Made by a program: the position numbers and the translations under genes. A model generated the notes under the pieces. That model was not told where the DNA came from. It searched no databases and saw nothing but the letters and a program-made list of their open reading frames with translations. Positions 417 to 46,703 of a DNA stretch of 64,000 nt are shown one piece after another. Each line of letters starts with the position of its first letter. The first letter of the stretch is position 1. Source of the stretch: Podarcis muralis (lineage: Eukaryota); contig NC_135663.1 of the NCBI RefSeq assembly GCF_964188315.1, positions 24,924,001 through 24,988,000 on the forward strand, read 5' to 3'.

Positions 417-1124
417 TCGGGTACCCAAAAAGCTACTGCTTGGGCTATTGCTGTATCTGGATTCAAGGTAAGGAAAGGAGGCTCCTTACAGGCAGATTCA
501 ATTAAGAACTATGGGTGGGGCAAATAGTGCTTTCTTCATAGTGCTGGTGAGTACTATGAATGGAACAAGTTCTTATTTAGAGTCAGGTGACTTAATTGGA
601 AAGGCTATTAAACTACTTCTAGTACCTTAGGCTGCAATCCTAACCCCACTTTCCTGGGAGTAAGCCCCACCGAATTCACTATGACTTACTTCTAAGTAGA
701 CACGATGAGACTGTGCTGCAAGTCTCATCACAATTTTGCTAGAGCCTACTTGGTGCATTCTGGCTGTTCTGGAACTGCAGTTCAAAACCAGCTTTGTTTC
801 AGACTTGATATCACTGCTGCAACTTTCCAGATTTAAGTCAACCACAGCAGCAGGTTTCATTCATTAAATATAAAACACGCACCTTTACATTGTTGGATGG
901 CTATCTAGTTTAACGTCCTTCTGATGCTGGAATACACTACTAGAGCATCCCTGATGTTGGTCATCCAGTCCCACTGTGTATTGGGAGACTCACTCTAATG
1001 GAGAGTAAATCTCCCACTATCACAACACAGTCTTCCACCTTTCTTCCTAATGGTGCAACAGAAAACATGAGTGTTTCCATCCTAGTGGCAGCCCTTCAAA
1101 TATTTGGCCATCATATATGCTCTT

Positions 1125-4800: not shown

Positions 4801-7460
4801 TTTTTGAATAGCTTTCAATTATATTTTGAACGAACAGCAGATACTTTACCTCTGTCTTGCAGTACATTCTTGCTGTCCACATGGATTTCTCCTATGGCAG
4901 AAAACAACATATTTAGTGTTGCAATAAAAGTGTAGACTGTTCACTTCTTTTCTATATATAATTGTGTTGGTTCAAAGGCTATGTAGATTCTGCTTGCTCA
5001 TTAAACTCAAGAAGACTTTAATCCAGCCTTGGCCAGGTGTCCAAGCTGTTTTGTGCAGCTGTGTGCCTGCAGAACAGTGACAGGGAAACTGTAGCCTTCC
5101 AGACACTCTTGAATTATATAGAAGACCTTGTCTCTGGCCATGCAGGTTGGGACTGATGGGAATTGAAAGTCCAGCAATGATGCGGCTCTAAGACAAAACA
5201 TGGGTTAGCATGAACAAAAGGGTTCCCAGAGAAATCACAGCCACTGCACTCCTCCCCTGATCCACCTGCTGCAGCAAGGTAAATTATGATTGGGATTAGT
5301 GTGCTGACCAAACCTGGGCTCATAGCTTGTCTTCTTCAAAGAAATCATGAGCTGTAAAAGGAAGAAATGTACAGCTCACATTTTCTCTGGAGTAGAAAAT
5401 GGAAGTTGATGCTGCCCTAAAGACTGTCACATTGTTGTTGCACATGAGACAATGGAGTGTGCCTCTGGGGGGTGAAGTCAAATGGCTGCATTAGCAGCAC
5501 TGAAGTGACCTCCCTGGAGCACAAACCTGGGCAGTGTTTATGGATGTCCTGAGCTGCACAAGGACAAGACTCCCCCCCCCCCTCTTGGCCTCACTGATGT
5601 GTTTCAAAGGAAAGCAGAGGGATGCATTTGGCACCAGCTTGGCAGGAGCTGCTGGAAGACGCCAGCCAATTATCTTAGGGACACCACTCTAGATTTGTAT
5701 AGGGCATGGGTAGGCAAGCTAAGGCCTGGGGGCCAGATCCGGCCCAATCGCCTTCTAAATCTGGCCTGTGGACGGTCTGGGAATCAGCGTGTTTTTACAT
5801 GAGTAGAATGTATCTCTGGGTTATTTGTGGGGCATAGGAATTCGTTCTTTTCCCCCCTTCAAAATATAGTCCGGCCCCCCACAAAGTCTGAGAGACAGTG
5901 GACTGGCCCCCTGCTGAAAAAGTTTGCTGACCCCGGTATAGGGTTTACTCCTTAGCCTTGTCTTCTCCCGAAGATATTCCCCCAAAGCAGCAGAGGTTTG
6001 GGGTCAGTTTTCCTTCTCCTAGATGGGCTACCTCCCAGCTGGATGAGCCCCACCTGCCCCTCACTTCCCTCCACAGCACATGCAGAAACTGTCTTCTTGA
6101 CCACTGGTCTTGTCTGCTCAATCCGCAAAAGCCTGTCTTCGCATGCAGGGGAAGTCCCTAACTCACTGAAGGTTTGAGACCCACCAGGCCAAGTCAAAGC
6201 CATTCTCGGGCATAGCTGTCAACTTTCAGATTTGAAAACAAGGGCTCAGCAGCCTCGAAAATAAGGGATCAGCAACCTCACCTGTTCCGGGGACAGTCTA
6301 CAGGATACAGTATCTAACAAGCCGGGATAGCAGCGGGAAACGGCGCTGGAATAAGGGAATTTCCCGCAAAAAGGAGGGAAGGTTGACAGCTATGTTCTCG
6401 GGGTGTGGCTTCTGCGGCCGCCTGCTGGCAGCTTCTAGGAGCCACAGGTGAGAGCTGAGCGCACCCTGTACTGTTCTTTCCAGTTACCCCCAAATCTGGG
6501 CGTGGGTCTGGCTGGCTTTGCAGCACCACGGAATAACCGGCTCTCCCCAGCAGCCAAGCACCCGACTCCCTGCCCTGCGGGAGCGACAACAAACGTGCCC
6601 GGCAGCTACAACCCAGCCCAAAACACAGCGACGCGGCCACGTGACGACAAGGAGAAGGAGGGGCGGAGCGGGAGGAAACACAGGAAGGCGAGAAAGAACA
6701 AAGGAAGGAGGCGAACAGAAGCCGACTCGAAGCCAGGAGGACAAAGGGCGGGCGTGGACAGCACTTTTGCTTTCTCTCTCCCCCCACCCCAACGGCAAAA
6801 AAGAATAACCCTTAGTGCCCCCCTGCTTGAACCAAGCCTCAGGAGGTCCGTGTATCATATATTGATCGCTAAATGCAAGTACAGATGCACAAGCCATTCT
6901 TTCCTGAACACGAGCGTTCTGCAGAGGATGCGAGTTCTTGCATGCACACCACCCATTTCAAAGAGTCCTGGGAATCGCGGGTTCATAAAGGGTGCTGGAA
7001 ACGGGGGCTCACTGAGGGGTGAGCTGCAGTTCCCAGGGCTCTTCCGGGGAGCAAAAAGGCTTTAAATGGACTGGGTGTCCCCCTGGTTCCCATTCAGACG
7101 TTGACACGCAGGCAGACTCCAAACCCCACCGACGGGATCCCTCGCTCTCTCCGGGGGTTAAAGGCGGCGCGCAGGCTTCCTACTGGGGGGCGCCTTTTGG
7201 AGACCCGTCTCCCGCGGCTGTTCCTCCCCGCCGGGAGAAATCTCCGAGCTCTGACCATGCAGGCGGAGAAGCCGAGCGAAGGGGAAGGAAGAGCCGCCAC
7301 CGGCTGCACCCGGGCCGCGCTCAGGCTTCCTGCCCCGCCGCCCCTCGGTTTCCCCACCAGTGCGCAAAGGGCGCCTTTGTGCACAGACGCCCCTGGCGCT
7401 CGGCTTCCGGCGCCTACCTGAGCCGTTGTTGGAGTTTCTCTGCCGCTTGGAGCTCGCCAT
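1872..7460 (-). CDS. CASP6: Caspase-6, 5' part (exons 1-4); remaining exons lie left of the window
   Basis: join(7418..7460, 3612..3654, 2941..3093, 1872..1948), GT-AG introns with consistent phases. Translation [105 protein letters not shown] keeps the TETD prodomain site and the [24 protein letters not shown] motif. The catalytic SHG/QACRG exons were not found in the window. Confidence 0.95.
5705..5935 (+). mobile_element. hAT-type MITE nested in an older interspersed repeat (~5445-6200)
   Basis: 8-bp TSD gtataggg; sister copies at 11527-11840 and 47980-48231. Confidence 0.85.
6211..6394. mobile_element. hAT-type MITE, TIR CATAGCTGTCAAC
   Basis: Perfect 8-bp TSD ttctcggg. Confidence 0.9.
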
Positions 7461-7800
7461 GGCTGGGCTTTCGACTCGCACGCCCGAGACTGAGGGAGGA
7501 ACCCCCTTGGGTGCTGCTTCTGCCGGAGTCAGCGTTTCTCCTCCTCCAGGCAGCCGCCTCCCTCCGCCCACCTTTTTCTCCCCCTCCACCCAGCCCGAGT
7601 TATCTTCCTCTGTCCCTCTCGGTTATCCAGGCGGGGCGTGGGCTGCTGCTCCTGGGTGGACGCACGGCTCGAGGAAGCTTCCGTGTTCCTTCCCTCCGAA
7701 GGTCAAAGAACTCGCCAGGGCTTGTCCCCGAGGCTTGTTTTCGTTGCCAGCCCCCAACCCTGCCGTCCCAAGACGTGTCCAAGCAAAGCAACAAATGCCA
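6400..7800 (-). promoter_or_regulatory. CpG island around CASP6 exon 1 and promoter (approximate bounds)
   Basis: High GC and CpG content spanning the ATG at 7460 (context cccagccATGG). Confidence 0.7.
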
Positions 7801-8225
7801 ACCGCCTCCCCTCCCCAAGGTGTATACAGTAGTTCCAAGGCTGGCCCAGTTGTGAGGTAGAAAAATAGCACAGGCTTTCTTTCTGGCATTAAAAAACACA
7901 TTGATAATAAATATAATAGCAGATAATAAATATATAGCAGTTTGCTGCCTATTGCCTAATGGCTGGGCCGGTCCTGTTCCTACAACTTAATTTATTTTTA
8001 TTTTATTCTATAATTTTTCATAACATTTTAGAATATTCATTTAAACAACCTTAAAATATCGATGACTTCCCTTCTTCTCTTATCATGATTCACTTTGCAA
8101 AACATAAATCCCTGCATATTTTACATAAACTAAACCATTCAATATTTCATTATTACATCCATCAAAACTTATTTACAGTACACTGTTGTATTTATCTTAA
8201 TGCTGCCAACGGTCTCAAGTGTACG

Positions 8226-11526: not shown

Positions 11527-11840
11527 CAGGGGTTAGCAACCTTTTTCAGCCATGGGCCAGTCCACCGTCCCTCAGACCATGTGGTGGGCTGGACTATATT
11601 TTTTTTGGGGGGGGGGGGGGGAATGAACGAATTCCTATGCCCCACAAATAACTCAGAGATGCATTTTAAATAAAAGCACACATTTTACTCATGTAAAAAC
11701 ACCAGGCAGGCCCCACAAATAACCCAGAGATGCATTTTAAATAAAAGGACACATTCTACTCATCCCGAATCATCCATGGGCTGGATGGAGAAGGTGATTG
11801 GGCCACATCCGGCTCACGGGCCTTAGGTTGCCTACCCCTG
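11527..11840 (-). mobile_element. hAT-type MITE
   Basis: TIR caggggttagcaa/ttgcctacccctg; TSD agctagaa/agcaagaa; internal tandem duplication. Confidence 0.85.
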
Positions 11841-13117
11841 AGCAAGAATAAAGGCTTGTAAAATGAATCCTGCAGATTTTCCTCAGTATAGTATGCTTCT
11901 CAGTTAAGTTTTATTTATAGCAAAATGACATGACACACACACTGCTTTGACTCTTTAATTCTTCTCCCCCACTTTACACAAATACAGTTCTTTTTTTCTT
12001 TTTCTTTTGCAAATTTTCACGCTAAATTATTTCCCAGAAGAAGATATATCACAGACCACTTTTCAAGTAATTTCATTCAGTAGTTTCTAGTGCTTGTGTG
12101 TTCAGAACTTGAGAACAACTCAGCATTAAAAGTTCACATTCTTTTATAAAAGACAAAATACATTTGACAAAAAACTCTATAAAATCAAAGATAAAAAAAT
12201 GGAACACCCATTTTGTAGGTTTCGATCCAACTAAAGTTGGTTGTGACCAAGACCTATTAAAATTAATAGGGCAGACAGCCCCACTGTTTTGATTGGGTCA
12301 GTTATAATTAACATTAGCAGCATGGGAACAGATTATTTCTCACAAATTACTTCATTTTAATATATATATATAGAAAAGGTTAAGAGAAATTCTATTTCTA
12401 TTAATATCAAATAGGCAAGTACAGACAAATAAATTAGAATCTTTTTCTATTAAAGTCAAATGCGAAAGTACAAATAAATTATTAAAAATCAAGTGGGAAA
12501 CAACCCTTGCAGAGTTCACAAAGCAATTCCATAAGCCTAAAACACAGAAACAATGGTAAAAGTATTCACTAGTCATATTAAGTTCTGAAACAGTACAGAA
12601 GAAACAGGTTTGATAGTCAAATGCTCCGCACACTAAATGCAAATAATTCTCTTGTTCAGGCCAATAATACATATTAAGACACCTTTACTTTACAGAATGT
12701 CTATGTGTCTAAAAACACTTGATTAGAGATCAAAAATAATTTTAAAAATTTATAGTGTTCTTGGATAATTGGGGAGCAGGGGAATCAATAGCTTGGTTTC
12801 ATTGCTTTGGCAGATGGATTTGATGCACCCTAGAATTCCAACATGTAAACAACTTAACTTGGTCAGTTAAAACTTCAAGGGAGATATGCAACCAAGTAAT
12901 CATCAGAGTAGATCCAATGAGGTTAGTGTGCTTAATGTACACAATAGTGGATCTAGTCTGAATATGACTCAGTCAGGTACCATCTATAGTTTTAAGGCAC
13001 TTGAGAATCTGTTGTTAAAGTAATCCTTAAACACTGAGATTAATAATCTGACATGCTATAATTGTTGGTAGAGGCAAATAGTGATCTGGCGCCTATTCAC
13101 TCAAAAGTAAGCTCCAC

Positions 13118-14752
13118 CGGAATCTGGGGTGAGCAGAGAGGCAGTTTGGGGGTCGATGCTGGAGCTGGTAGGAAGCGATTGGTGAGTAAACAGCAGGATG
13201 GTTGCCACTTTTGCTGCTTGGTACAAAAAGGACCTAAGTACGGAGACCTTGAAGGCAAAACTTGCCCACCAAAAGTCCATTTCCCGAAAGGAGACCAGAC
13301 ACAAGGAGTTTAATAAAGGCAGGCAGTTTGGACTCACTGATGTCAATGCACAGGCATCAAGAAATGGTGAGTCTCCACTGCCGGAGGAGACAGGTGAAGG
13401 GTACTTACTAAGGAGCAGCACAAAGTCAAGCCAAAAATCAAGCGTTTCAGCTAAGTCTCATGCCTTCCCTGCCTTCCTTTCAAAATCAACAAATATACCG
13501 GTGCTTAACAAGCCAAAGGAGACGGTAACAAAAGGAGCAAGTGTGGAAATGCGGTTAACAAAGTCAAAGATGAAGAACCAATTGCAAGAATCAGTCAGAC
13601 CACTAGCTAGACCACCGCATTCAGTGATGGTACCTAGCAAGGGCTCCACTCTGCAAACAGCTCAGCATAACCAGAGGCAGATCTTCGTAGAGAAACCCCC
13701 CAAAGAGAGGAAAGGGGCACAGCCTACAACTTCCACAACTGCCGCTGGAAGAGTTACAGGAGCCACAGCTGCTGCTCTGACCAAAATATCACAGATATCC
13801 TGGCCTGCTGTGAATGCAGGTCTTCCGCTGCAGAAAAGCGAAACAAGGAATAGAAAACAGCAGCAGAGAGGGGTCAAAAATGCAAAGGTAACAGTGTTGT
13901 GTGGCATGAAAGAGAACCATTCAGTGGAGCCTCTTAAAGAAGGCGTGATCACCCAAATCCCTTTGGATACAGCCACAGAGCTGGTTAAAGATAACCTTCC
14001 AGCCCCTATCATCCTGGCTCTTGCACCACAAAGGAGAGAGTGCTCCTTTGCCCCTGAGAATTTTGTGTTCAAGCCTCCGGAGGGTTTGACTACCTACAAA
14101 GTCAAGCCAATGTAAGATGTGCTCCTGTCGCCCAATCTTTGCTGGAGCCCTGCAAAAGACCACCAGCAAAGTCCCTGGAGAAGGTGCTCTGGAAGTTTTG
14201 CCACAGGGCTGTGGGCTTAAACAGAAGGTCTCTAGCCCAGGAATGACAAAGGCAGTTCTTCAGGAACATCCATCTTGAATTTCCAGGTGCTAAAACAGAA
14301 TGTGTTAACTAAAGAAACAATGGATGCTACTCCCTTTGAAAAGCAGATCAATCCACAGAAAGTGGACCTGCCAGCAAGTGATTCGTCTGACCCAGCAGGA
14401 GAGCCACAACAAAATTGAATCACTCAAGTCCTTCCCAGGTTCTCTTCTCAGTGACTTCTCCTGCGATGGTGCAGTGCTTGAGCTTCAGCCCAAACTGGAT
14501 GGCAGCCTCTTCATCACTCTGAGGAACGAGGCGGAGAAATTTGCAGTTCCCACTCTGAGGAACGAGGCGGAGCGACCTCATTGTTTTCTCTCCCCTTACT
14601 TAATCAGAAGGGGCAAAATAAGTTTGATTTTTATTTACAAACCGGGGTGGGTGGGGGGAGTGGACAGAAAGAAAATTTACTGTGGTTTTTCTATGTTAAG
14701 TACTATTGAATGTTTAATAAAGCTGGTCTGTGTCTTCTCGGGGGGGGGGGGG
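13118..14752 (+). pseudogene. DLGAP5: Processed (intronless) DLGAP5/HURP retrocopy with open N-terminal ORF 13198..14115
   Basis: ORF start WYKKDLSTETLKAKLAHQKSISRKETRHKEFNKGRQFGLTDVN matches the recalled DLGAP5 N-terminus (RKDISTEMIRTKIAHRKSLSQKENRHKEYERNRHFGLKDVN). SFAPENFVFKPPEGLTTYKVKPM matches SFAPKDFMFQPLDGLKTYQVTPM. C-terminal DLIVFSPLT* at 14574-14603 matches NLITFSPL. AATAAA at 14716, homopolymer tail, 12-bp TSD agtaagctccac (13106-13117 and 14753-14764). Confidence 0.9.
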
Positions 14753-15418
14753 AGTAAGCTCCACTGTTTTTAAAGGGGCTTACTCCTAGGTAAGCATGCA
14801 GAGGATTGCTGTGTAAGGCTGAAAAATCTAAATATACTTACTAAGTGGTAAGCCTCAGTGAATAGTGAGACTTAATTGAACATACATAAGGTTCATTAAT
14901 TAACTGAACACACACAGGACTGAACTACAGAAGCAGAAACAGAATATCTACTCAAGGGAATATTCCACTATAACAGCAGCATAAGATTGCAAACAAAACC
15001 CATACATTTTTAAGGCATTTCCCTTCTGTCCATAAAGCAAGGCTCTGAGGAGATGCCAAATGCTGGTAAGACCAAAGTTTGACCTACTTTTTACCCCATG
15101 CAATAGTTACGGGTGTTCACCTCTATCAGTTTAAGAGCAGCATCCACAATCCCCTCAAGAGGAAAAACTCACGTAGAGGTACCACTCCGAGGCCAGTTGC
15201 CAAAATTGCAATTTTCGCTTTCAAAGTTGTATGCAAAAGATCCTTAAAGATTAAGGATGCAAAGGTGACAGAGGGAAGAAGTGCTATATAAAAAAACTAG
15301 TGTCTTCTACAGAAGTGTAGACCAGCTTGACGCTCCGACTGTATGCTTTGAACAGCTTTGTAACAACAAAAGGGCTCTCACAACACAGATGAACTGAACC
15401 AGGTCGAAAGCTTCTCTC

Positions 15419-18400
15419 TTAAAGGTCTGTCTTGTCTTCATACCGACACATACATGCTGCTCTTTGACTGTCAAGGTATGGCTTGCATCCTAAATGTATG
15501 ACTGCGTCAAACACTAGTTGAACTGTTGATTCACACGCTGCAAGGAGGAAAAAGCAAATAAATTTTTAAATTATTGTACTGAGGCCCAGTTGGCACTATA
15601 AAGAAACAAAGCATCCACTTAACCTAGACCCAACACAAGGTATGCAGCTTATTCTGCTGAATGACATAAGATGAAATTTCAATCTATTGAACAACCAACT
15701 TATACTTGTCACTTCCATCACCATCATTGCTCAGAGTAAGACCACCACCATGGGAATTGGGGTGGATGTGGAAATACGATCCATGTAGAGGTACCAGCTC
15801 CACACGTGCTTGAGATAATGACATGTAGTCAGCTATAAGGTGAGTGAGCCCTATATCTGTTTGGGCAAGTTTAAGGTTTGGTGGGCATCCGGTTCATAGC
15901 AATACACAAGCAATTCAGCTCCTGCAATAAGACAGAAGCTGCTTGTATTTTGCACTGCGCTGATCACAGCCTGCAAGATTTGGCTAACTCATAAGTGTGA
16001 CTGTGGCCAGTCTACACTGTGCCAAAAGTAGAATTAGCCCCAGAAAAAGACATTATGTTGTGACCTTCTTTGCACCAAACTTGCAGAAATCAAAACTGCA
16101 ATGAAGGCCTAAAATTAAGAACTGGCAGATAATAAACCATCAAGAGAAGTTTTTTATTCATCATATGGTAAATCTAATATTCACTCTCCACACTGCTATA
16201 GCAATTTGGTGGAATTGCTACATGCTAATGGCTTTGCTTAGGTAGGACATCTGCTAGGAGGACGTGTCTTTTTCACATTCTACTGTAAGGGGAGGAATGT
16301 TCAGTGGTGACACAAGATAGAGCAGCATTTGCAAACAGGATACCCTCCAGATGTTTCGGACCACAGTACAAAACCTATCCAGTCCAGGACTACACTCCAA
16401 AACCTACTGACCCAGCCAAAACCTATCCCAAAACATCATCTTACAGAGCTGCACAAGGAGAGAAGAATTCGACCAAACTGGGCAGCATAATCATGCATTG
16501 CTCAATGCAACATTTCCAGTATCAGGCAAATCCTTCCACTTTTGTGCAATGATGAACACAATCCATACTTCATCATCTGTTAGAAAGTGCTCTTCTTTAT
16601 TAGCTGCACACAGGCACTGGGAAAACTGAACAGAGTTAAGTCACGTTACTTTGTGCCTCCTGGTTTTATTATTTCTAATAAAACACTACCTACAGTTATA
16701 TGTCAGCTCTGTAAATATCTGTTATAGCTGCGTTATTCCAGACAAGCTTACCTTGTACGCTCTCTGGTATTCCCAGTGTCTTCTGTACATCTCTACAGAT
16801 CTTAGAGAGGCAATATTGAAACTCCTCGTCGCAATCGTGTTTTTTGTTGCCACAGGTATCGTAACACCTGTCATGTTGATTGCAGCATTTTGTCATTGAA
16901 GGAATGCCAATGTCAAACTGAGAAGCAAGTTATAATAGTCAGCATTCCTTGAGAACAGTTGTGAGACTTGTTATTATTATTATTTTTAATGTACTAGAAG
17001 ATGAAATTGTGTCTCCTGAGGGAAACTCATGTATTCTGTGGTTTTTATATTGAAATTTTATATTGTGAACCACCCTGAGATCTGCAGATGAAGGCTGGTA
17101 TATAAATATTAACAACAACTCCTCAGAACCAGCTAGAAGAGGGATGAATTTATGCTCCAAAAATATATCAAGAAGTTAATAAAACAGATCAAGTCTTAAA
17201 GGAGAATTTTAATAAACCAAATAAAGAAAAGCCCACAGGAAATTTAAGATGGAAATTGGAAAAGGATTTTCATCAGAGAAACCAAATTATAAAAGTTTCT
17301 CTAAAGCAGTCATGGGAGCAAAGATCTTGTTGGATTTGAGCTCCCATCAGCCTCAGCCAGCATGGCCAATGGTTAGTGATGGTGGCAGATGTAGTTTAAA
17401 ACATCTGGAGGATCACACATCTTAAAGTACCGGTAACTAGGAAAAGGGGAGCCCAGTTACTCAGTCTGGAGAAACTGGCACTTTGTTGTTCTAGTTAAGC
17501 ATATATTTCAGAGGAGCCGAAACCTAGAATTTGCACATTCAGAGACAAACTGATAATCTCATAGGGGTCAGAGAGGACTTTTTGAGCATATTGGCTGATA
17601 ATCTTGTAATGTGGTTTCCTGTAACAAAATTTACTAGCTTTTGCTGTACAGGATAGTTCTATTATCAGATTCTCAATGCATCCAGCACCCCGCCTAATAC
17701 CCTCAAGCAAAAAAAAAAAAAAGTGTTGATCTATCTACAGGACTAAGAGACAGCTTTTACACAACAGGAGCATTTAGGCTGGCAGAATAAGGGGTAGATA
17801 TCTTGACACGTGAGGTGGCAATGAAGGAGAAACAAATCCACAGTGCTTCTTCATGCAGTACATGGTTAAACTATGGAATTCGGATTTATGGGAGGCATTG
17901 ATCCATGATCAACCGAGATGGCTTTAAAAGAGGATTGGACAAAGCCATGGAGGGGAATGCTGCAGATGATGGCAGTAATGCTTCAGAATACCAGCTACTG
18001 GAAAACACAGCAGCGAAGAGTGCTGTTGCGTTCAAACCTTGCTTGTGCGTTTCCCACAAGCATCTGGTTGGGCCACCGTGACAATAGGATGCTAAACTAA
18101 ATGGGTCATTGGCAAGGCCCAGCAGGCTCTTCTTATGTGTTGTGCGATGGGATTCAGCTGGTGGAGTTGGCTGAATGCGGACAAGGTGCTGGCAGCTTAG
18201 ACGCCTAACTACATTTTCTCTAGACTTCTGCACCTCTTGGCTTACTGAATCTAGCAGAGAGAGTTTGACTAGTTGGGTGCAGAGTGTGGTTAATGTTTCA
18301 ATGCACGAACGGGTGGTCCCTGCAGCCTTGAAAGAGGCGGTGGTGTCATTACTTATAAGGAACCAGCTGTGGACCCCTTGGACTGGAATAACTACTGACC

Positions 18401-21400: not shown

Positions 21401-22018
21401 AGGATTCCCAGGAGATCCCTTATCTGATCACACTTCATGCACCTTCCAAACTGTTTAGACTTGAACCTAACGCTTTCAAGATTCAGTAAAAAAAGGTAAA
21501 GGTACCCCTGACCAATAGGTCCAGTTGCGGACGGCTCTGGGGTTGTGGCGCTCATCTCGCTCTATAATAGGCCAAGGGAGCCGGCATTTGTCATGTGGCC
21601 AGTATGACAAAGCCGCTTCTGGCGAACCAGAGCAGCGCATGGAAGTGCCATTTACCTTCCCACCGGAGCGGTACCTATTTATCTACTTGCACTTGACATG
21701 CTTTCGAACTGCTAGGTGGGCAGGAACAGGGACCGGTACCAACCGGGAATTGCCGCGTTACCCTCCACCCCGCTCTCCCCACTTCTTTAGGGCACTATCG
21801 GCATTACCATCGCTGCACTTATACTGACAGAGCCCATCCTCTCCTCCCAGGAGATCCAAAGCAGCATTCAGGTAAGTGTCGATCTTGTGGACGCCGTTCC
21901 TGATGGTCTTCAGCGTCATCCTCCAGTCGGGGGTCTGGGCCTCCTGGCACTGGGCGGGCAGGGGCCGCATCCCCAGCAAGCCGCAGGTCACGAGAAGCGG
22001 CAGCAGGGCCCGGCTCAT
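15419..22018 (-). CDS. PLA2G12A: Group XIIA secretory phospholipase A2, 4 exons, 190 aa
   Basis: join(21808..22018, 19080..19156, 16752..16917, 15419..15537) = 573 nt. Signal peptide, TDWRMTLKTIRNGVHKIDTYLNAALDLLGGEDGLCQYKC, PPNGCGSPLFG, catalytic CCNQHDRCY, C-terminal YEDKTDL*. Confidence 0.97.
17790..18138 (+). mobile_element. CR1 LINE 3' end
   Basis: gatggctttaaaagaggattggacaaa...ggctcttcttatgt terminal pattern; bounds approximate. Confidence 0.65.
18200..18460 (+). mobile_element. L2-clade LINE ORF2 fragment
   Basis: Frameshifted ..VPAALKEAVV.LL..(LDP)..NY.P....PFLGKVVE motif. Confidence 0.7.
19566..19992 (+). mobile_element. Tc1/mariner-pogo-type MITE with internal AGCCGCTAA tandem array
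   Basis: TA TSD; TIR cagtggcgtcccgcaagacga; inverted sister at 59185-59520. Confidence 0.9.
21487..21750 (-). mobile_element. Sauria SINE, 3' portion (PLA2G12A intron 1)
   Basis: Reverse complement of the SINE body and ACCTTT tail. Confidence 0.75.
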
Positions 22019-22620
22019 CGTCTCTCCCGGGCGCGCAGGGGCCAGAGTGCCAGAACGCCGCCCACGCGTGGCGCAACGGAGCTCCGCGGATTCGGAGGGC
22101 TCGGGAGGGAGGCGCGCGCGCTGCCGGGCCGGCTAGTCTCCCGTTCCTCCCGCGGGCAGCTGCATTACGCACGTACAGTCGCCGCCGCAGGCAGCCGCCT
22201 CGCCTCCACGGCGCTTACCGCTCGGAGGCCACGGAAGCGCTACCATCCCGGACAAGCCCCTCCGGTCCCTGTTTGCAGGCGCGCCGTCCGCCTCCAGCAG
22301 CCCCGCCTCGGTCGCGTCGCGTCAGGGCGCTTCGGGCGCAGAGAAGGAAAGGGGGCGCGGCTAGCGCTCTCCCGGTAGGGAAAGAGGTCGTGGCGGTTGG
22401 AGGTAGGCGGTGCGCGGTGGGCAGGCTCTTGAAGCTCTTCCAGAGGCCTTAAAGGAAAAGCGCGCATTTTTTCCCTGGATCCCACGGCTTCCACTTCGGG
22501 GGTGGGTGGGTGACGGACCTGTATTACGGGGACAAAAGTCACCTTTCCCTCCCCACTGCGGGCGCAACGGCGCGCGATGGAGAGCGCACTGCTGAGCGAG
22601 TGTCGTTGTTTTGGCTCCAC
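21750..22620 (-). promoter_or_regulatory. CpG island / promoter of PLA2G12A (approximate bounds)
   Basis: Dense CpG around exon 1 and upstream. Confidence 0.75.
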
Positions 22621-22765
22621 CGCCTTGCCTAAGCTATTTTCACACCATGCTGTTTCTATTTTTCTTTTGGGGCTAGCTACCACAATTGGTAGAATCTTCT
22701 GATTGAGGGGAATAGATCAGTGTGGGTGGCTGACTTAAAGCAAGATTTGCTTCTGTGCACTGGTA

Positions 22766-25015: not shown

Positions 25016-40848
<15,833 letters not shown>

Positions 40849-43599
40849 GGTGAATAGTTTCTGTCCGTATTTAGAATATTTTCTTTCCCTAAAATTTCCC
40901 CCCAGTCTCAGACTTCTGCTCTGTGTTTAATTTTTAACCATTAGCAAATATTTAAAAAGATGGTTCTGAAATAACTACGAGAGCATCCATGTGCATGGAT
41001 GGTTCTCAGCTCTCAGACAAGATCCTGCTTAAACCTCAGTTCAATGTTCACTGCAAAAACGATAAGAGAAGCAAACGGGTAAAAAGAGTGGTAGATCCCT
41101 GAAGGAATGTGCTCTCCTCTGCATAACTCTCACACAACTTTCTTAATACTTTCACTTATTTATGTAGCTGCTTTATAGTTGCCTGCTTCTCTGGAACAAA
41201 AGATAATGGATGATTTGCATATTTAACTGACAGGAGACTAAGATTTCAAGGTTGTGTTTGGCCAGTTGCTCAATGCCTTGGCAAACGGATAAAAAAAGTA
41301 TTTGTGCACTAAGCTCTGGGAGTGCCAGTTTCCGGGAATGGCTAATCAACTAGCCCTTCAAAATCAACAAATAGTGGGGCTGTACAGTTCAAAAATCCTT
41401 CTATTTAATCATAGCAAGGGAAGGTGGTTTGTGTTTTAGTTTTTCTTCTTAGGAACAAACTCAGTCCATTGGTCCATCTAACACAGTGTTGTCTGCAGCC
41501 TGTAGCAGCAACCTCTTCACACAAGCCTTCCCACTAGGGGCCGCCTCCAACTTTAAGTTACAGTACACAGTTCCTGCCCCCTCCCTTCATCTGTACTGAT
41601 ACTTGGGGGACCACACCATAAAACAGTTGTAAGGGGAGTGGAGCAACAAATGCTCTTTGTCAGGGCTTTTTTTCAGCTGGAACTCACCAGAACTGAGTTC
41701 CTGCACCTGAAGACGGGCACCATTGCCGTTATAAGAGAACAAGGTTCATGGTGAGTTCCAGCACCTCTTTTTCTGGAGAAATAGCACCGAGCACATTAAG
41801 ACATACAAGAAAATGGCTTACCTCCAGGAATTTTGTCATGGGCTTAGGGACCCTGGAGGCCTGCATGTCTACATTGTGTAACTTCTCTTGCTGTACGCCA
41901 ATAGTTATTTGGAAAGAAAAGTTCTGTTTTGGCCATGCCTGCTTAGAAATAAGCACCACTCAGTTCAATAGGGATTAATCTCAAATCAGTGTGCAGAAGA
42001 TTGGGCTTTGTGTGATTAAAATACACGTATTTCTTTCACTTTAAAAACACAGTAGCTGATTTCTCAGTAATTCTTATCACTGACGATTAGGAAAGAAGGA
42101 AGTAAACAGAAAATTAGCCCTACAGATATTTCCCATACATTGCCTGATTTAGTAATGTATGCAACTTATAAAAACTTTTCTGTTGTTTCCGTCTGTAGCA
42201 GGAACCCCCCCACCCCAATCATTCTGTTTGCACAAACTTCACACACACTCACACTCACACACTACATACGCCACATTTCTGTTATAAATTCATAGAAAAT
42301 CAACCATACATCGGATTTGCACTGTTCCATTTTATTTACTATCAAAGGAGGGTGGCTTGGTTTCTGGTCAGCCATGATCCCTTCAGCATACCAGCACATC
42401 CACAGGGGCCCTGCCCAGTTGCTATGTCAGCCTTGATAATCCCAGACAGAAGACAATCAAAATGACAAAGAACTTGCATATGGTAGTGGATTCAGCACAG
42501 ACTGAAACAAAGGACAATGATCAGATCTTCCCTCTGGGGGGCAGGAAACTGCAAACTCCCCTTTGTCACCTGGAAAGTACTCATGGGGAGGGGGAAAGGA
42601 GGAACCAGCCAGGTGACAGGACACTCAGGTTACCACCACAACTCCTCCCTCAACCCCTCCTTTCTGTAATGTATGCATGATGTTTCTGGGGGTGGGCTTG
42701 ACCTAGAGGAGGGGAATTTCAAAAGTTTTTATAAGACCTGGCACACTATTTTTCTGGGTCTTTCCTCTCTCCTGCAAGTGAGGGGAACACCCTGATGCAT
42801 CAGTTCAATAAAGGCCAAGCCTACAGGCTGCTGTTTTGCTCCAAGTTATCCTGGTTGGTGTCTTTGTTTTTGTCCAAGGGAGCCCTCAGATTTTTTCCGT
42901 TAACACGTCCAACAAATTCCCAGTAATCAAATGCAGTGTCATGGAAGCTTCTTAATAACTAGCATTCAAAACGCTAGTTTGGAGACAAATTTTGCATGCA
43001 AAATTCAAAATAAAGCGAATAGGCATGTTTAGATATTTGCATAAGAATGCCTACAGCTACAATAGACATTCTCATTCTTCTGTTATAATTTGATTTATTA
43101 TATGATACATAAGGAAACACCAAAAGATTGAGGGAAAATTCAATCAATTTTTCCCCCTGGAACCTGATTCATAGATCTTTTGGACTACGACTCCTATCAG
43201 CCCCAACCGGCTCCGATCAAGGATACATATATACATTTTGTCCACAGCAGTTGACAAAAAACTTCACTTTGGAAGTTTCGCTTAAATTTTCGGGGGGATA
43301 GCAAGCGTCCCACCGTTGCAGAACCACAAACTTATTGCGACACCAGCTTCCATCAGGTGCATGCAAACAACACAGTAATGTGGAAACAAGCGAATTACGA
43401 AAACAGACACGGCGTTCATTTTTTTTCGCAATATGATTTATTACAAGGTGCGGCTTCTGCTGCCGCCAGTGACGTCCGAACTGTGCTAAATACTGCAAAT
43501 TTTATAAAATAATGCAATTTTCTCTGTGTGTGCGTGTGTGGGTTTGTTTCTGCTGCACACGAACACACACTCCGTGAGATAATCCGTAAGGTAATAATA

Positions 43600-44120
43600 T
43601 TCCACGAGACAACCTGCGCCCTGCGGAGCTCCGGGCGCCCGTCAATTCGCCTGCCTCGCTTCGCCGATGGGATCGCCGTTCCTCGGGGAAACAAAACATC
43701 TCTATGGTTGGCTACGCGTCGTAAAACGGAAGCGCGTGATTTTACGGCGGGCCTGCGATTGGGTGGATCGCCGGCAAGCGTGGAAGGAGGAGGAGGACCG
43801 CCGGAAGTGGCCTGCGCGCGTGAGTCCTTGGCGGAAGAGCAGTGCGTCCACGTGGGGAGGAAGAGCGGAGCGTGCCGCGCTTAGGTGGGAGATCCTGTTA
43901 GAGTCGGAAGGGACCCTGGGGGTCATCCAGCCCGACCCCCTGCAATGCTGCTTGCAGGGGCTTGCCTCGTCTTGCAGGCGCCTGGAGCCCGTGTGGGCTG
44001 GGAGGAGGAGGGGCGGGGGTCGTGGTTGCTGCTGCAGCCTTGCTGTGCTTCTTTGCAAAGCCCCGGGTTGGGCGCCTGCTTCTGAACCTCCCTTGAAGCT
44101 CCTGGCCGTTTATGGAGCGG
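43600..44120 (+). promoter_or_regulatory. CpG island / promoter and probable non-coding exon 1 of GAR1
   Basis: CpG-rich; ETS motif CCGGAAGT at 43801; candidate donor GTGAGT at 43820; coding exon begins after the AG at 46687-46688. Confidence 0.7.
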
Positions 44121-46703
44121 GGCTGTGTTGGGAAATACGTGGCTCTTCGGTTGGGGTGTGGAACGCACTTACTTGCGAGTAAACCCCATTGAACTCGGTG
44201 AGGCTTACTCCTAAGGCGATGCGTGCTATTAAAACGACCCGCTTCCTCATATGTTGGTTTTTGCCGTTGATTATGAAGTCATACTGAATACAGTGGTACC
44301 TCAGGTTACAGACTCCGCTAACCCAGAAATATTACCTGGGATTAAGAACTTTGCTTCAGGATGAGAACAGAAATCGCGGCCGCAGCAGGAGGCCCCATTA
44401 GCTAAAGTGGTATCTCAGGTTAAGAACAGTTTCAGGATAAGAACAGACCTCCAGAACGAATTAAGTTCTTAACCTGAGGTACCATTGGTTTTTTTTGACA
44501 GGGGCAGGTTTTTGTCCCTACACCTGAAGCACTGTGGTTCGTTGTTATTTTTTAAAGAAACATCACGCATGTTGGAAGCACAAGATTCGGATCGCTCGTT
44601 GGGTTTTTCGAGGCTAGGCAGCATCACTGTGCACGTTTTGGGAAATGGTGTGAGAGAAGGAAGGGAGAAGATAAGCTTTTGAGGAAGGTAGCAGCATCAA
44701 AAGTTTGGGGTTTAGGCATTTTGCAATGCTTACACTGTAGAGTGGTCATTTCCCCACCCGTAATTGCCAGGAGCCTCAAGTACCTGGTTGGGGAGGGGCC
44801 CTGGTCCCTAGGGACTAAAAATAATTGGTGTTACATGGTGTTGGTTTCAAGGTTGCATAGTTGGGACAGTTCTCTGCCCACCATGGAACCTTAAAACTAC
44901 AGTCATTGCAGCAGTCCTCTTGATATTATGGACTACAGTTTTCATCACTCCTGATCGTTGGCCTTGCAGGCTTGGTCTGATGGAAATCAATAGTTCAAAA
45001 CTTCTAGAGGGCACCAGGTTGGGAAGGCTGGTTTAAGGGCTAAAGAGTAGTTCTTATATAATCGTTTAACAGTTTTCATTATATAAAAATGAATTTTTTA
45101 CTATACTGAAGAGTAAATAACACTTCAGTATAAGTTTAGTGTAATATTTAAGTTGGAAGTGGCGTAAGGAAGATAGTGGTGGGTGAAGAAATAGCTGTTC
45201 CCCTTCTCCCTTTTTAAAAAATAAAAAACAGTCCTTGCTATATGTCCTTTCACAACACTGATACAATGCCTGTGATGATTTGAGTATTTAGGTAAGGTTT
45301 TGGTTCACTTTCATGGGCCAAATGCTAAAGTTGCATCATTTTAAAGAATTATGGTTCAAGCTAGAGGTTGCTTCACTCCTTGAATAGTACCTCATTTCTT
45401 AATTTCACCTTTTGTTGGAATAAAGTTGGGTTGTATAACAGAATTGAAATGTAGGGAGTCTTAGTTATTTACCAGGTGTCTTAGACCAGGGAGCAGCAAG
45501 GTTTACCTCACCTGGGCCGGTTCACTCCAGCGGAGATCCCTCTGTGGGCTGGATCACCCACGCCCACAATTTTCTGCATCTGCACAGACGCGATTTCTGG
45601 CCCCACGGAAGTGAGTCCCCACGCTGTGCTGCATGCAGGGACTCGAGTGGGCGGCTTGGTTTGGGGCTGGCTCATGGGACGATTAAATGACCCCTGTGGG
45701 CTGCTTGTGGTTGTCGACCCCTCTCTTAGACTCATGGTGGCCCTTGGCAGACTAATACCTTCCTACTCCCTCATTTAGCTCATGAATGTGGTAGACTTGC
45801 TGTCTAAAACTACAAGTACAGTGGTACCTCGGAAGTCAAATGGAATCCGTTCTGGAAGTCTGTTTAACTTCCAAAATGTTCGGAAATCAAGACACGGCTT
45901 CCGATTAGCTGTAGGAAGCTGCTGCAGCCAATTGGAGCCGCATTAGACATTCAGGTTCCAAAGAATGTTCACAAACCGGAGCACTCACTTCCGGGTTTGT
46001 GGCATTTGGGAGCCAAAACGTTCGAGTCACAAGGTGTTCATCAACCAAGGTACGACTATCTGTTTGATTCATAGACAGCAGTACCTCAGTTTTCGAGCGT
46101 CTCAGAAGCCGAACGTTTCAGATGACAAAAACCTGGAAGTAAATGCTTTTGTTTTCAAACACGCCTCAGAAGTGGAATGGCTTCCGCTGCGTGTTTTTCA
46201 GTTTTCTCCATTGAATTTGCAGCCAACCCCTTTGTGCCTCAGTTTTTGAACATTTCAGAAGACGGTCTTCCAGAACGGATTACGTTCGAGAACCAAGGTA
46301 CCACTGTATTACAACTGCTGTGTGGAAGCCACAGGAACAGCTAAGGAATTAAATATATCTGTGCATCTAGTTTAAGGATGGTTGGTGCAACTGAAATGTG
46401 AAAAAAGAAAGTTTTTTATGGGAGAAAAAAATCTCTTGTTAAGAGGAATTTTATGAGGATTAAATGACTGTTTGATCTCAATAACCTAAAAAACCCAAAC
46501 TCAAAACCTAACGTCTTATGTCTTCAAGGTAACTGATCTTTTGAAAAGTATTTTGGATGATGTAGATTAATATATGATAACGCTAGCGAATGCATGCAGT
46601 GAAATGACTGGCACAAGTCTAGAGTGATTCAAGCGCTACAGAGATATATAGGAGTGCTGTTGATTTTCATGAATTCTTTATTGAACAGAAGAGAGAGAGA
46701 GTC

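Follow-up and report, generated by a model that had tools for sequence, protein, structure and literature searches.

A probable old processed pseudogene of DLGAP5/HURP with a long surviving N-terminal frame downstream of PLA2G12A in Podarcis muralis

The intronless DLGAP5 copy at 13118-14752 (plus strand) of the window, by which we mean the whole 64,000-nt stretch of Podarcis muralis DNA analysed here, is very probably an old processed pseudogene of DLGAP5/HURP. It extends from the parental 5'UTR exon to the poly(A) site at a locus unrelated to that of its parent, it separated from the lacertid parental genes before these diverged from one another, and it has since accumulated substitutions in a pattern that fits neutral evolution both within and beyond its open reading frame. 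The first-pass annotation of this DNA had regarded the copy as a candidate truncated retrogene. We describe below why its long frame is better read as a survivor, and where some evidence for an alternative is left.

Results

Origin of the copy

The origin of the copy is demonstrated by its exon structure. Thirteen to 14 consecutive blocks of the window can be aligned, in order, with the exons of DLGAP5 in P. muralis, P. raffonei, Lacerta agilis and Zootoca vivipara, where the gene has its introns, and the ends of these blocks coincide with GT/AG splice sites in the parental genes. The 5' end of the copy includes a 5'UTR exon that in the lacertid parental genes precedes the ATG exon by about 2.6-3.3 kb. 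Parents were found by a library-wide search followed by a Varanus query, which gave the 856-860-aa DLGAP5 proteins of P. muralis (XP_028583436.2, 860 aa), P. raffonei, P. lilfordi, L. agilis and Z. vivipara. The four lacertid genes and that of the outgroup Rhineura were fetched with their introns, and all comparisons with the parents were made exon by exon (MAFFT), with no joined spliced sequence and with codons split by exon borders dropped. Short fragments from the library search were parental exons of other reptiles and birds, and not additional copies.

The parental DLGAP5 adjoins a galectin gene, while the window instead holds CASP6, PLA2G12A and CFI. Both the identification as an intronless DLGAP5/HURP retrocopy and its non-syntenic position, as first described, are therefore borne out, and on these alignments 13118-14752 reads as a processed copy of DLGAP5 mRNA. 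The accompanying statement that the copy runs from 5'UTR to 3'UTR holds for both ends but not for the whole mRNA, from which 105 nt of exon 3, about 184 codons and about 170 codons are absent.

Several observations concern the parental gene itself. In the L. agilis DLGAP5 model (5497-6108; window 13546-13714) the end of exon 4 is longer and the start of exon 5 shorter than in Podarcis and Zootoca. An ENA metagenome contig, ERZ27260045:k141_34305, is a DLGAP5 fragment 94.5% identical to L. agilis, and as such is host DNA of a Lacerta-like lizard. The contig may be chimeric, as a repeat from another part of the gene is matched by its first 145 nt. Between the new and the old P. muralis assembly the DLGAP5 protein shows 25 differences in 860 residues, a number similar to that separating P. 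muralis from P. raffonei or P. lilfordi; this would point to a haplotype at the parental locus that is deeply divergent or introgressed.

Boundaries and host repeat

The 12-bp target-site duplication at a TC/AAAA site that had been claimed for this insertion was recovered exactly, with AGTAAGCTCCAC at both ends and CACTC/AAAAGTAAG as the upstream context. When the insert and one duplication are removed, both flanks rejoin as a single unbroken copy of a SINE-like repeat (pattern search and alignment). Since the flanks restore one repeat copy and the duplication is exact, the boundaries of the insertion are fixed to the base (Table 1). The same repeat recurs at about 650 and about 44170 of the window; a BLAST search with the reconstituted empty site gave no match in the remainder of the window, the repeat being seen by pattern search and alignment instead. 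This host repeat (...GTAAG.CCCA.TGA.TTCAATGGGGCTTACTCCCAGGTAAG...GGATTGCAGCC) is represented in the window by at least three copies, at 13106-13117/14753-14900, 560-780 (minus strand) and 44080-44300 (minus strand).

Table 1. Features of the DLGAP5 copy and its surroundings (window coordinates)
Feature	Position	Strand	Remarks
CASP6	up to 3.1 kb	-	
5' target-site duplication AGTAAGCTCCAC	13106-13117	+	exact 12-nt repeat; preceded by CACTC/AAA
Two untemplated bases CG, 5' junction	13118-13119	+	parents read TT before GAATCTG; homology from 13120
5'UTR from parental exon 1 (13120-13184) and start of exon 2	13120-13197	+	68-nt match to upstream parental exon
ORF, 305 codons	13198-14115	+	parental codons 1-87 and 123 to about 344, with deletions
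Scar of 105-nt in-frame deletion, parental exon 3	13460-13467	+	8 nt replace 113 nt; parental aa 88-122 gone
KEGV, 12 nt	13935-13946	+	in copy and outgroup Rhineura; deleted in 5/5 lacertid parental genes
TAA stop	14113-14115	+	specific to window lineage; older P. muralis copy has Ser (TCA inferred)
+1 frameshift, GCAAAAG vs parental GC-AGAG	14152-14158	+	common to P. muralis model, whose 339-aa frame stops at 14218-14220
-5 nt frameshift	14273/14274	+	exon-by-exon alignment
+1 nt frameshift	14305	+	exon-by-exon alignment
Junction of ~184-codon deletion, CA(A/C)AAT microhomology	14410-14415	+	parental aa 448-631 missing
Exon-exon junction skipping exons for parental aa 641-811 (~170 codons)	14440-14441	+	
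22-nt direct repeat, spacing 36, copy-specific	14515-14572	+	replaces parental sequence in last coding exon
Position of parental stop codon (TAA)	14601-14603	+	3'UTR follows
AATAAA (parents: ATTAAA)	14716-14721	+	parental genomic match stops 17 nt later, at 14738
G13 tract where poly(A) expected	14740-14752	+	directly before 3' duplication
3' target-site duplication AGTAAGCTCCAC	14753-14764	+	12/12 nt identical to 5' one
C-terminus of Ensembl P. muralis model A0A670IV42	14919-14981	+	21/21 residues encoded; flank beyond 3' duplication
PLA2G12A	stop 15419-15421; exons near 16.9 and 19.1 kb	-	
CFI	25-27.6 kb	-	
Opsin-type first exon	57 kb		

The AATAAA reported at 14716 is present, and beyond 14738 the parental genomic sequence diverges from the copy. 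In place of a poly(A) tail there is a tract of 13 G, and the AAA that would make the duplication 15 nt long is absent at its 3' copy. Homopolymers of G or C of at least 9 nt number 12, against 4 of A or T, in this AT-rich window (for example at 11607, 14740, 27221, 33244, 50140 and 58580), and such G/C runs are frequent also in four independently assembled lacertid loci. Orthologous composite runs switch between A-runs and G/C-runs, one being A10C4 in Zootoca, A6C5 in P. muralis and C11 in Lacerta, and a second G10A in Zootoca, G5A3 in Podarcis and G4A4 in Lacerta. A plausible origin of the G13 tract is a poly(A) tail that has been overwritten. Neither a promoter nor a CpG island was found at the retrocopy.

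Reading frame, lesions and domains

The frame was reproduced as described, with an ATG at 13198 in strong context (cagcaggATGG) and 918 nt open for 305 aa, and lesions are present from its end onward (TAA at 14113, +1 near 14154, -5 at 14273/4 and +1 at 14305). Relative to the parent the frame is not intact, being broken by the TAA, by these +1, -5 and +1 shifts and by two large internal losses. The segment of the copy for residues 123-447 carries 15-nt and 12-nt deletions, and the TAA is located at the 12-nt in-frame deletion of PSKA, which is common to the window copy and the older P. muralis copy. Parental residues 632-640 are retained between the deletion and exon-skip junctions, and residues 811-860 and the 3'UTR after the skip.

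A Pfam scan of the window ORF, the downstream frames and the 339-aa RefSeq protein XP_028599755.1 described below gave no domain. The Pfam GKAP domain (PF03359) occupies parental aa 444-598, inside the region of the ~184-codon deletion, and the part of HURP whose structure was resolved on microtubules (PDB 9duq, chain r) corresponds in alignment to parental aa 91-129, of which the copy lacks all up to aa 122. In human HURP, MTBD1 (aa 87-132) is a constitutive, high-affinity, structured microtubule site consisting of a helix and a groove loop, and MTBD2 (aa 22-50) is a weak, importin-beta-regulated one (PMC11549086). Since parental aa 88-122 are deleted, of the two sites the frame retains just the MTBD2-aligned stretch, in which the conserved N-terminus RYKKDLS...GRQFGL (aligning to human aa 22-50) is present with R8W and other changes. 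Compared with parental DLGAP5/HURP (P. muralis XP_028583436.2; human PDB 9dhz and 9duq), the copy shares the N-terminal 87 residues including the MTBD2-aligned stretch, the central low-complexity region, the SFAPxNF motif, the extreme C-terminus and the 3'UTR, but has lost MTBD1 (aa 88-122), GKAP (aa 444-598) and aa 641-811, and it evolves at an omega of about 1 where the parent has about 0.4.

Orthologous gene models in P. muralis

A word search among proteins of 168-534 aa gave, besides distant GKAP-bearing DLGAP5 proteins, the RefSeq model XP_028599755.1, 'disks large-associated protein 5-like', with 339 aa and 95% identity over 305 residues. It has the MTBD1 gap, the PSKA deletion and the +1 frameshift in common with the window copy, and both frames finish ...GLWA. 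It differs in having Ser for the TAA, which extends it to 339 codons, and in a 1-codon (3-nt) deletion and 5-8 substitutions of its own. The two-exon Ensembl/UniProt model A0A670IV42 takes its N-terminus from the retrocopy, with nearly all of the frame spliced out. As this model joins the copy to the flank at 14919-14981, the window and older P. muralis copies occupy the same genomic site, and its spliced structure hints at transcription of the copy. An exact look-up in the gene-position index found neither the 305-aa window product nor XP_028599755.1 on record. In both Podarcis copies compared the frame has stayed open, with its end at different stops (Ser versus TAA). The RefSeq 'DLGAP5-like' coding model of P. 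muralis is most likely better read as a retropseudogene.

Age of the copy

Identity of the copy to every lacertid parent is 79-96% per exon block, and dS between copy and parents is 0.12-0.15, against 0.07-0.11 among the parents. With Rhineura as outgroup to the four parents, the copy stands alone at 36 sites; at 11 it has the base of Rhineura and the four parents have a shared derived one, and at none is a derived base common to the copy and the Podarcis parents. These 11 versus 0 sites, together with the retained KEGV codons, demonstrate that the copying of the mRNA predates the ancestor shared by the DLGAP5 genes of Podarcis, Lacerta and Zootoca. As such, the copy is seen to branch outside the parental clade, which makes it old and not young.

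Substitution pattern

Changes in the frame along the copy lineage comprise 9.5 synonymous and 35.5 nonsynonymous ones over 204 and 663 sites, an omega of 1.15 with a wide confidence interval of about 0.6-2.5, compared with 0.30-0.51 for the same region in the parents. In a binomial test the parental omega of 0.42 was rejected (p=0.0014), and an omega of 1 fitted (p=0.36). Pairwise omega between copy and parents was 0.65-0.81. We took a Ka/Ks significantly below 0.5, or a branch omega below 1, as the mark of a functional retrogene, and found neither. Copy-specific substitutions are as dense in the frame (51/882, 5.8%) as downstream of it (35/555, 6.3%; p=0.73). The two checks that had been suggested for the retrogene proposal, dN/dS over 13198-14115 and the rate of this part relative to the downstream part, thus both gave the neutral answer: the lineage value fits 1 and rejects parental constraint, and the ORF has evolved no more slowly than the dead part.

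The same picture is obtained between the two Podarcis copies. Of the 18 differences between the window copy and XP_028599755.1, the derived state is on the window side in 10 and on the P. muralis side in 5; they include R8W, R202W and R282C, which replace residues that are invariant in all parents and outgroups. The nonsynonymous distance between the two, from protein differences polarised by the parents, is about 0.024; the introns of P. muralis and P. raffonei diverge by 3.9%, which when scaled by parental protein differences becomes roughly 2.5-3% for the two genomes compared, and this rough scaling suggests a ratio near 1. Taken from the alignments, the substitution pattern of the copy is neutral.

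Preservation of the frame

The 915 nt of the frame hold no stop and no frameshift despite 45 substitutions, and its deletions are in frame only (105, 15 and 12 nt in the copy lineage and 3 nt in the P. muralis copy). When 45 random substitutions were simulated on the reconstructed frame with the observed transition bias and CpG excess, the probability of no stop was 0.22. In introns of the same loci the indel rate is 0.133 per substitution and 23% of the indels are in frame, which predicts 4.6 frameshifts and a probability of 0.01 for none; at a rate of 0.05 this probability is 0.18. The next ~490 nt of coding-derived sequence contain 4-6 disabling lesions, a clustering with a post hoc p=0.002-0.015. 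Taken jointly, these figures give an intact frame a probability of about 0.002-0.04. An Anolis genome holds about 400 retrocopies (PMC3136929), so that one to about sixteen such frames per genome would be expected by chance, and the present locus was selected because of its open frame. The small excess of frame preservation would therefore be weak evidence, outweighed by the neutral substitutions. Nevertheless, because the copy is old, low divergence cannot account for the open frame, and a small unexplained excess is left. A transient early functional period after insertion is possible.

Discussion

The structure of the copy is consistent with the following history. A parental mRNA in which the exons for aa 641-811 were already skipped would have been reverse-transcribed and inserted, by LINE-type target-primed insertion, into a SINE-like repeat at a TC/AAAA site, at a time when the lineages of Podarcis, Lacerta and Zootoca had not yet split. 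Arriving without a promoter, the copy would then have drifted neutrally; MTBD1 would have been lost by the 105-nt deletion and GKAP by a deletion at microhomology, although the internal deletions may date either from reverse transcription or from later. The +1 frameshift would have capped the frame at 339 codons, the TAA in the window lineage shortening it to 305, so that the long N-terminal frame would be a survivor and not a maintained gene. The LINE machinery and an original poly(A) tail are putative elements of this history. The closest known systems are vertebrate LINE-mediated processed pseudogenes, with which the copy shares an intronless cDNA from 5'UTR to poly(A) site, a target-site duplication at a TC/AAAA-type site, the absence of a promoter, a microhomology deletion, frameshifts and neutral substitutions. 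In contrast to typical members of this class, it has a G13 tail, an exon-skipped source transcript and a frame open unusually long for its age.

The open frame could in principle reflect youth, the frame being intact for want of time, but nothing beyond the frame itself speaks for this. The modest identity to every lacertid parent in each exon block, a dS to the parents exceeding that among them, the branching outside the parental clade and the presence of the same insertion at the same site in the older P. muralis assembly make such an explanation extremely improbable, and low divergence as a reason for an open 918-nt frame, a caveat attached to the original proposal, is excluded for a copy that predates the lacertid parental ancestor. 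The proposal itself, a truncated retrogene active now or transiently after insertion, would have the copy encode an N-terminal HURP fragment with MTBD2 but without MTBD1 or GKAP, acting as a decoy or modulator; its transcription might come, for instance, from upstream antisense activity of the CASP6 CpG island about 5 kb away. We consider this unlikely. A frame of 305-339 codons is indeed open in two lineages of an old copy, the deletions inside it are all in frame with the disabling lesions clustered downstream, the joint chance of its preservation is low, its start context is strong, and both RefSeq and Ensembl place models at the orthologous P. muralis site. However, omega differs significantly from the parental value, substitutions are as frequent as in the dead part, the position of the stop is not conserved, and otherwise invariant residues are replaced, including some in the motifs RYKKDLS and RRERSFAPQNF. 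Almost the whole frame is removed by splicing in the Ensembl model, a promoter or CpG island is missing at the copy, and one to about sixteen such frames would be expected by chance among some 400 retrocopies (PMC3136929). With omega near 1, a rate equal to that of the dead part, an unconserved stop and a fragment from which MTBD1 is missing, the retrogene proposal does not stand up well. Its strongest form, an ancient retrogene whose frame was kept for tens of millions of years as an importin-beta/MTBD2 decoy tuning germline spindle assembly, is in our judgement a shade less credible still.

A different possibility is that the ORF is irrelevant and that the copy has a non-coding role. It is antisense to PLA2G12A and begins some 650 bp past the stop codon of that gene, within its 3'UTR or a little further on, where it could serve as donor of a poly(A) signal or as part of a spliced lncRNA. 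From the minus-strand PLA2G12A stop at about 15419 to the copy there is no minus-strand AATAAA or ATTAAA (a scan for these two forms), the first two minus-strand signals lie inside the copy at 14713-14718 and 14630-14635, and the two-exon Ensembl model links the copy to flanking DNA. Substitution and indel rates along the copy are neutral and show no sign of constraint, and we hold such a role to be improbable. An old processed pseudogene is the reading that we prefer. As such the copy is of little importance in itself, but it corrects the RefSeq coding model of P. muralis, preserves an ancestral lacertid DLGAP5 state in its KEGV codons, and implies that other Lacertini should carry the orthologous insertion downstream of PLA2G12A. 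Were it a maintained gene it would be a natural separation-of-function allele of HURP, with MTBD2 and without MTBD1; the evidence is against this.

The surroundings of the copy offer some further observations. GC-rich, CpG-island-like stretches lie at 6300-7900, 21800-22700, 33000-34250 and 43500-44200, corresponding to the presumed 5' ends of CASP6 and PLA2G12A, the vicinity of the 5' side of CFI, and the place where we would expect GAR1. The opsin-type first exon at 57 kb stands at the position where we would expect RRH.
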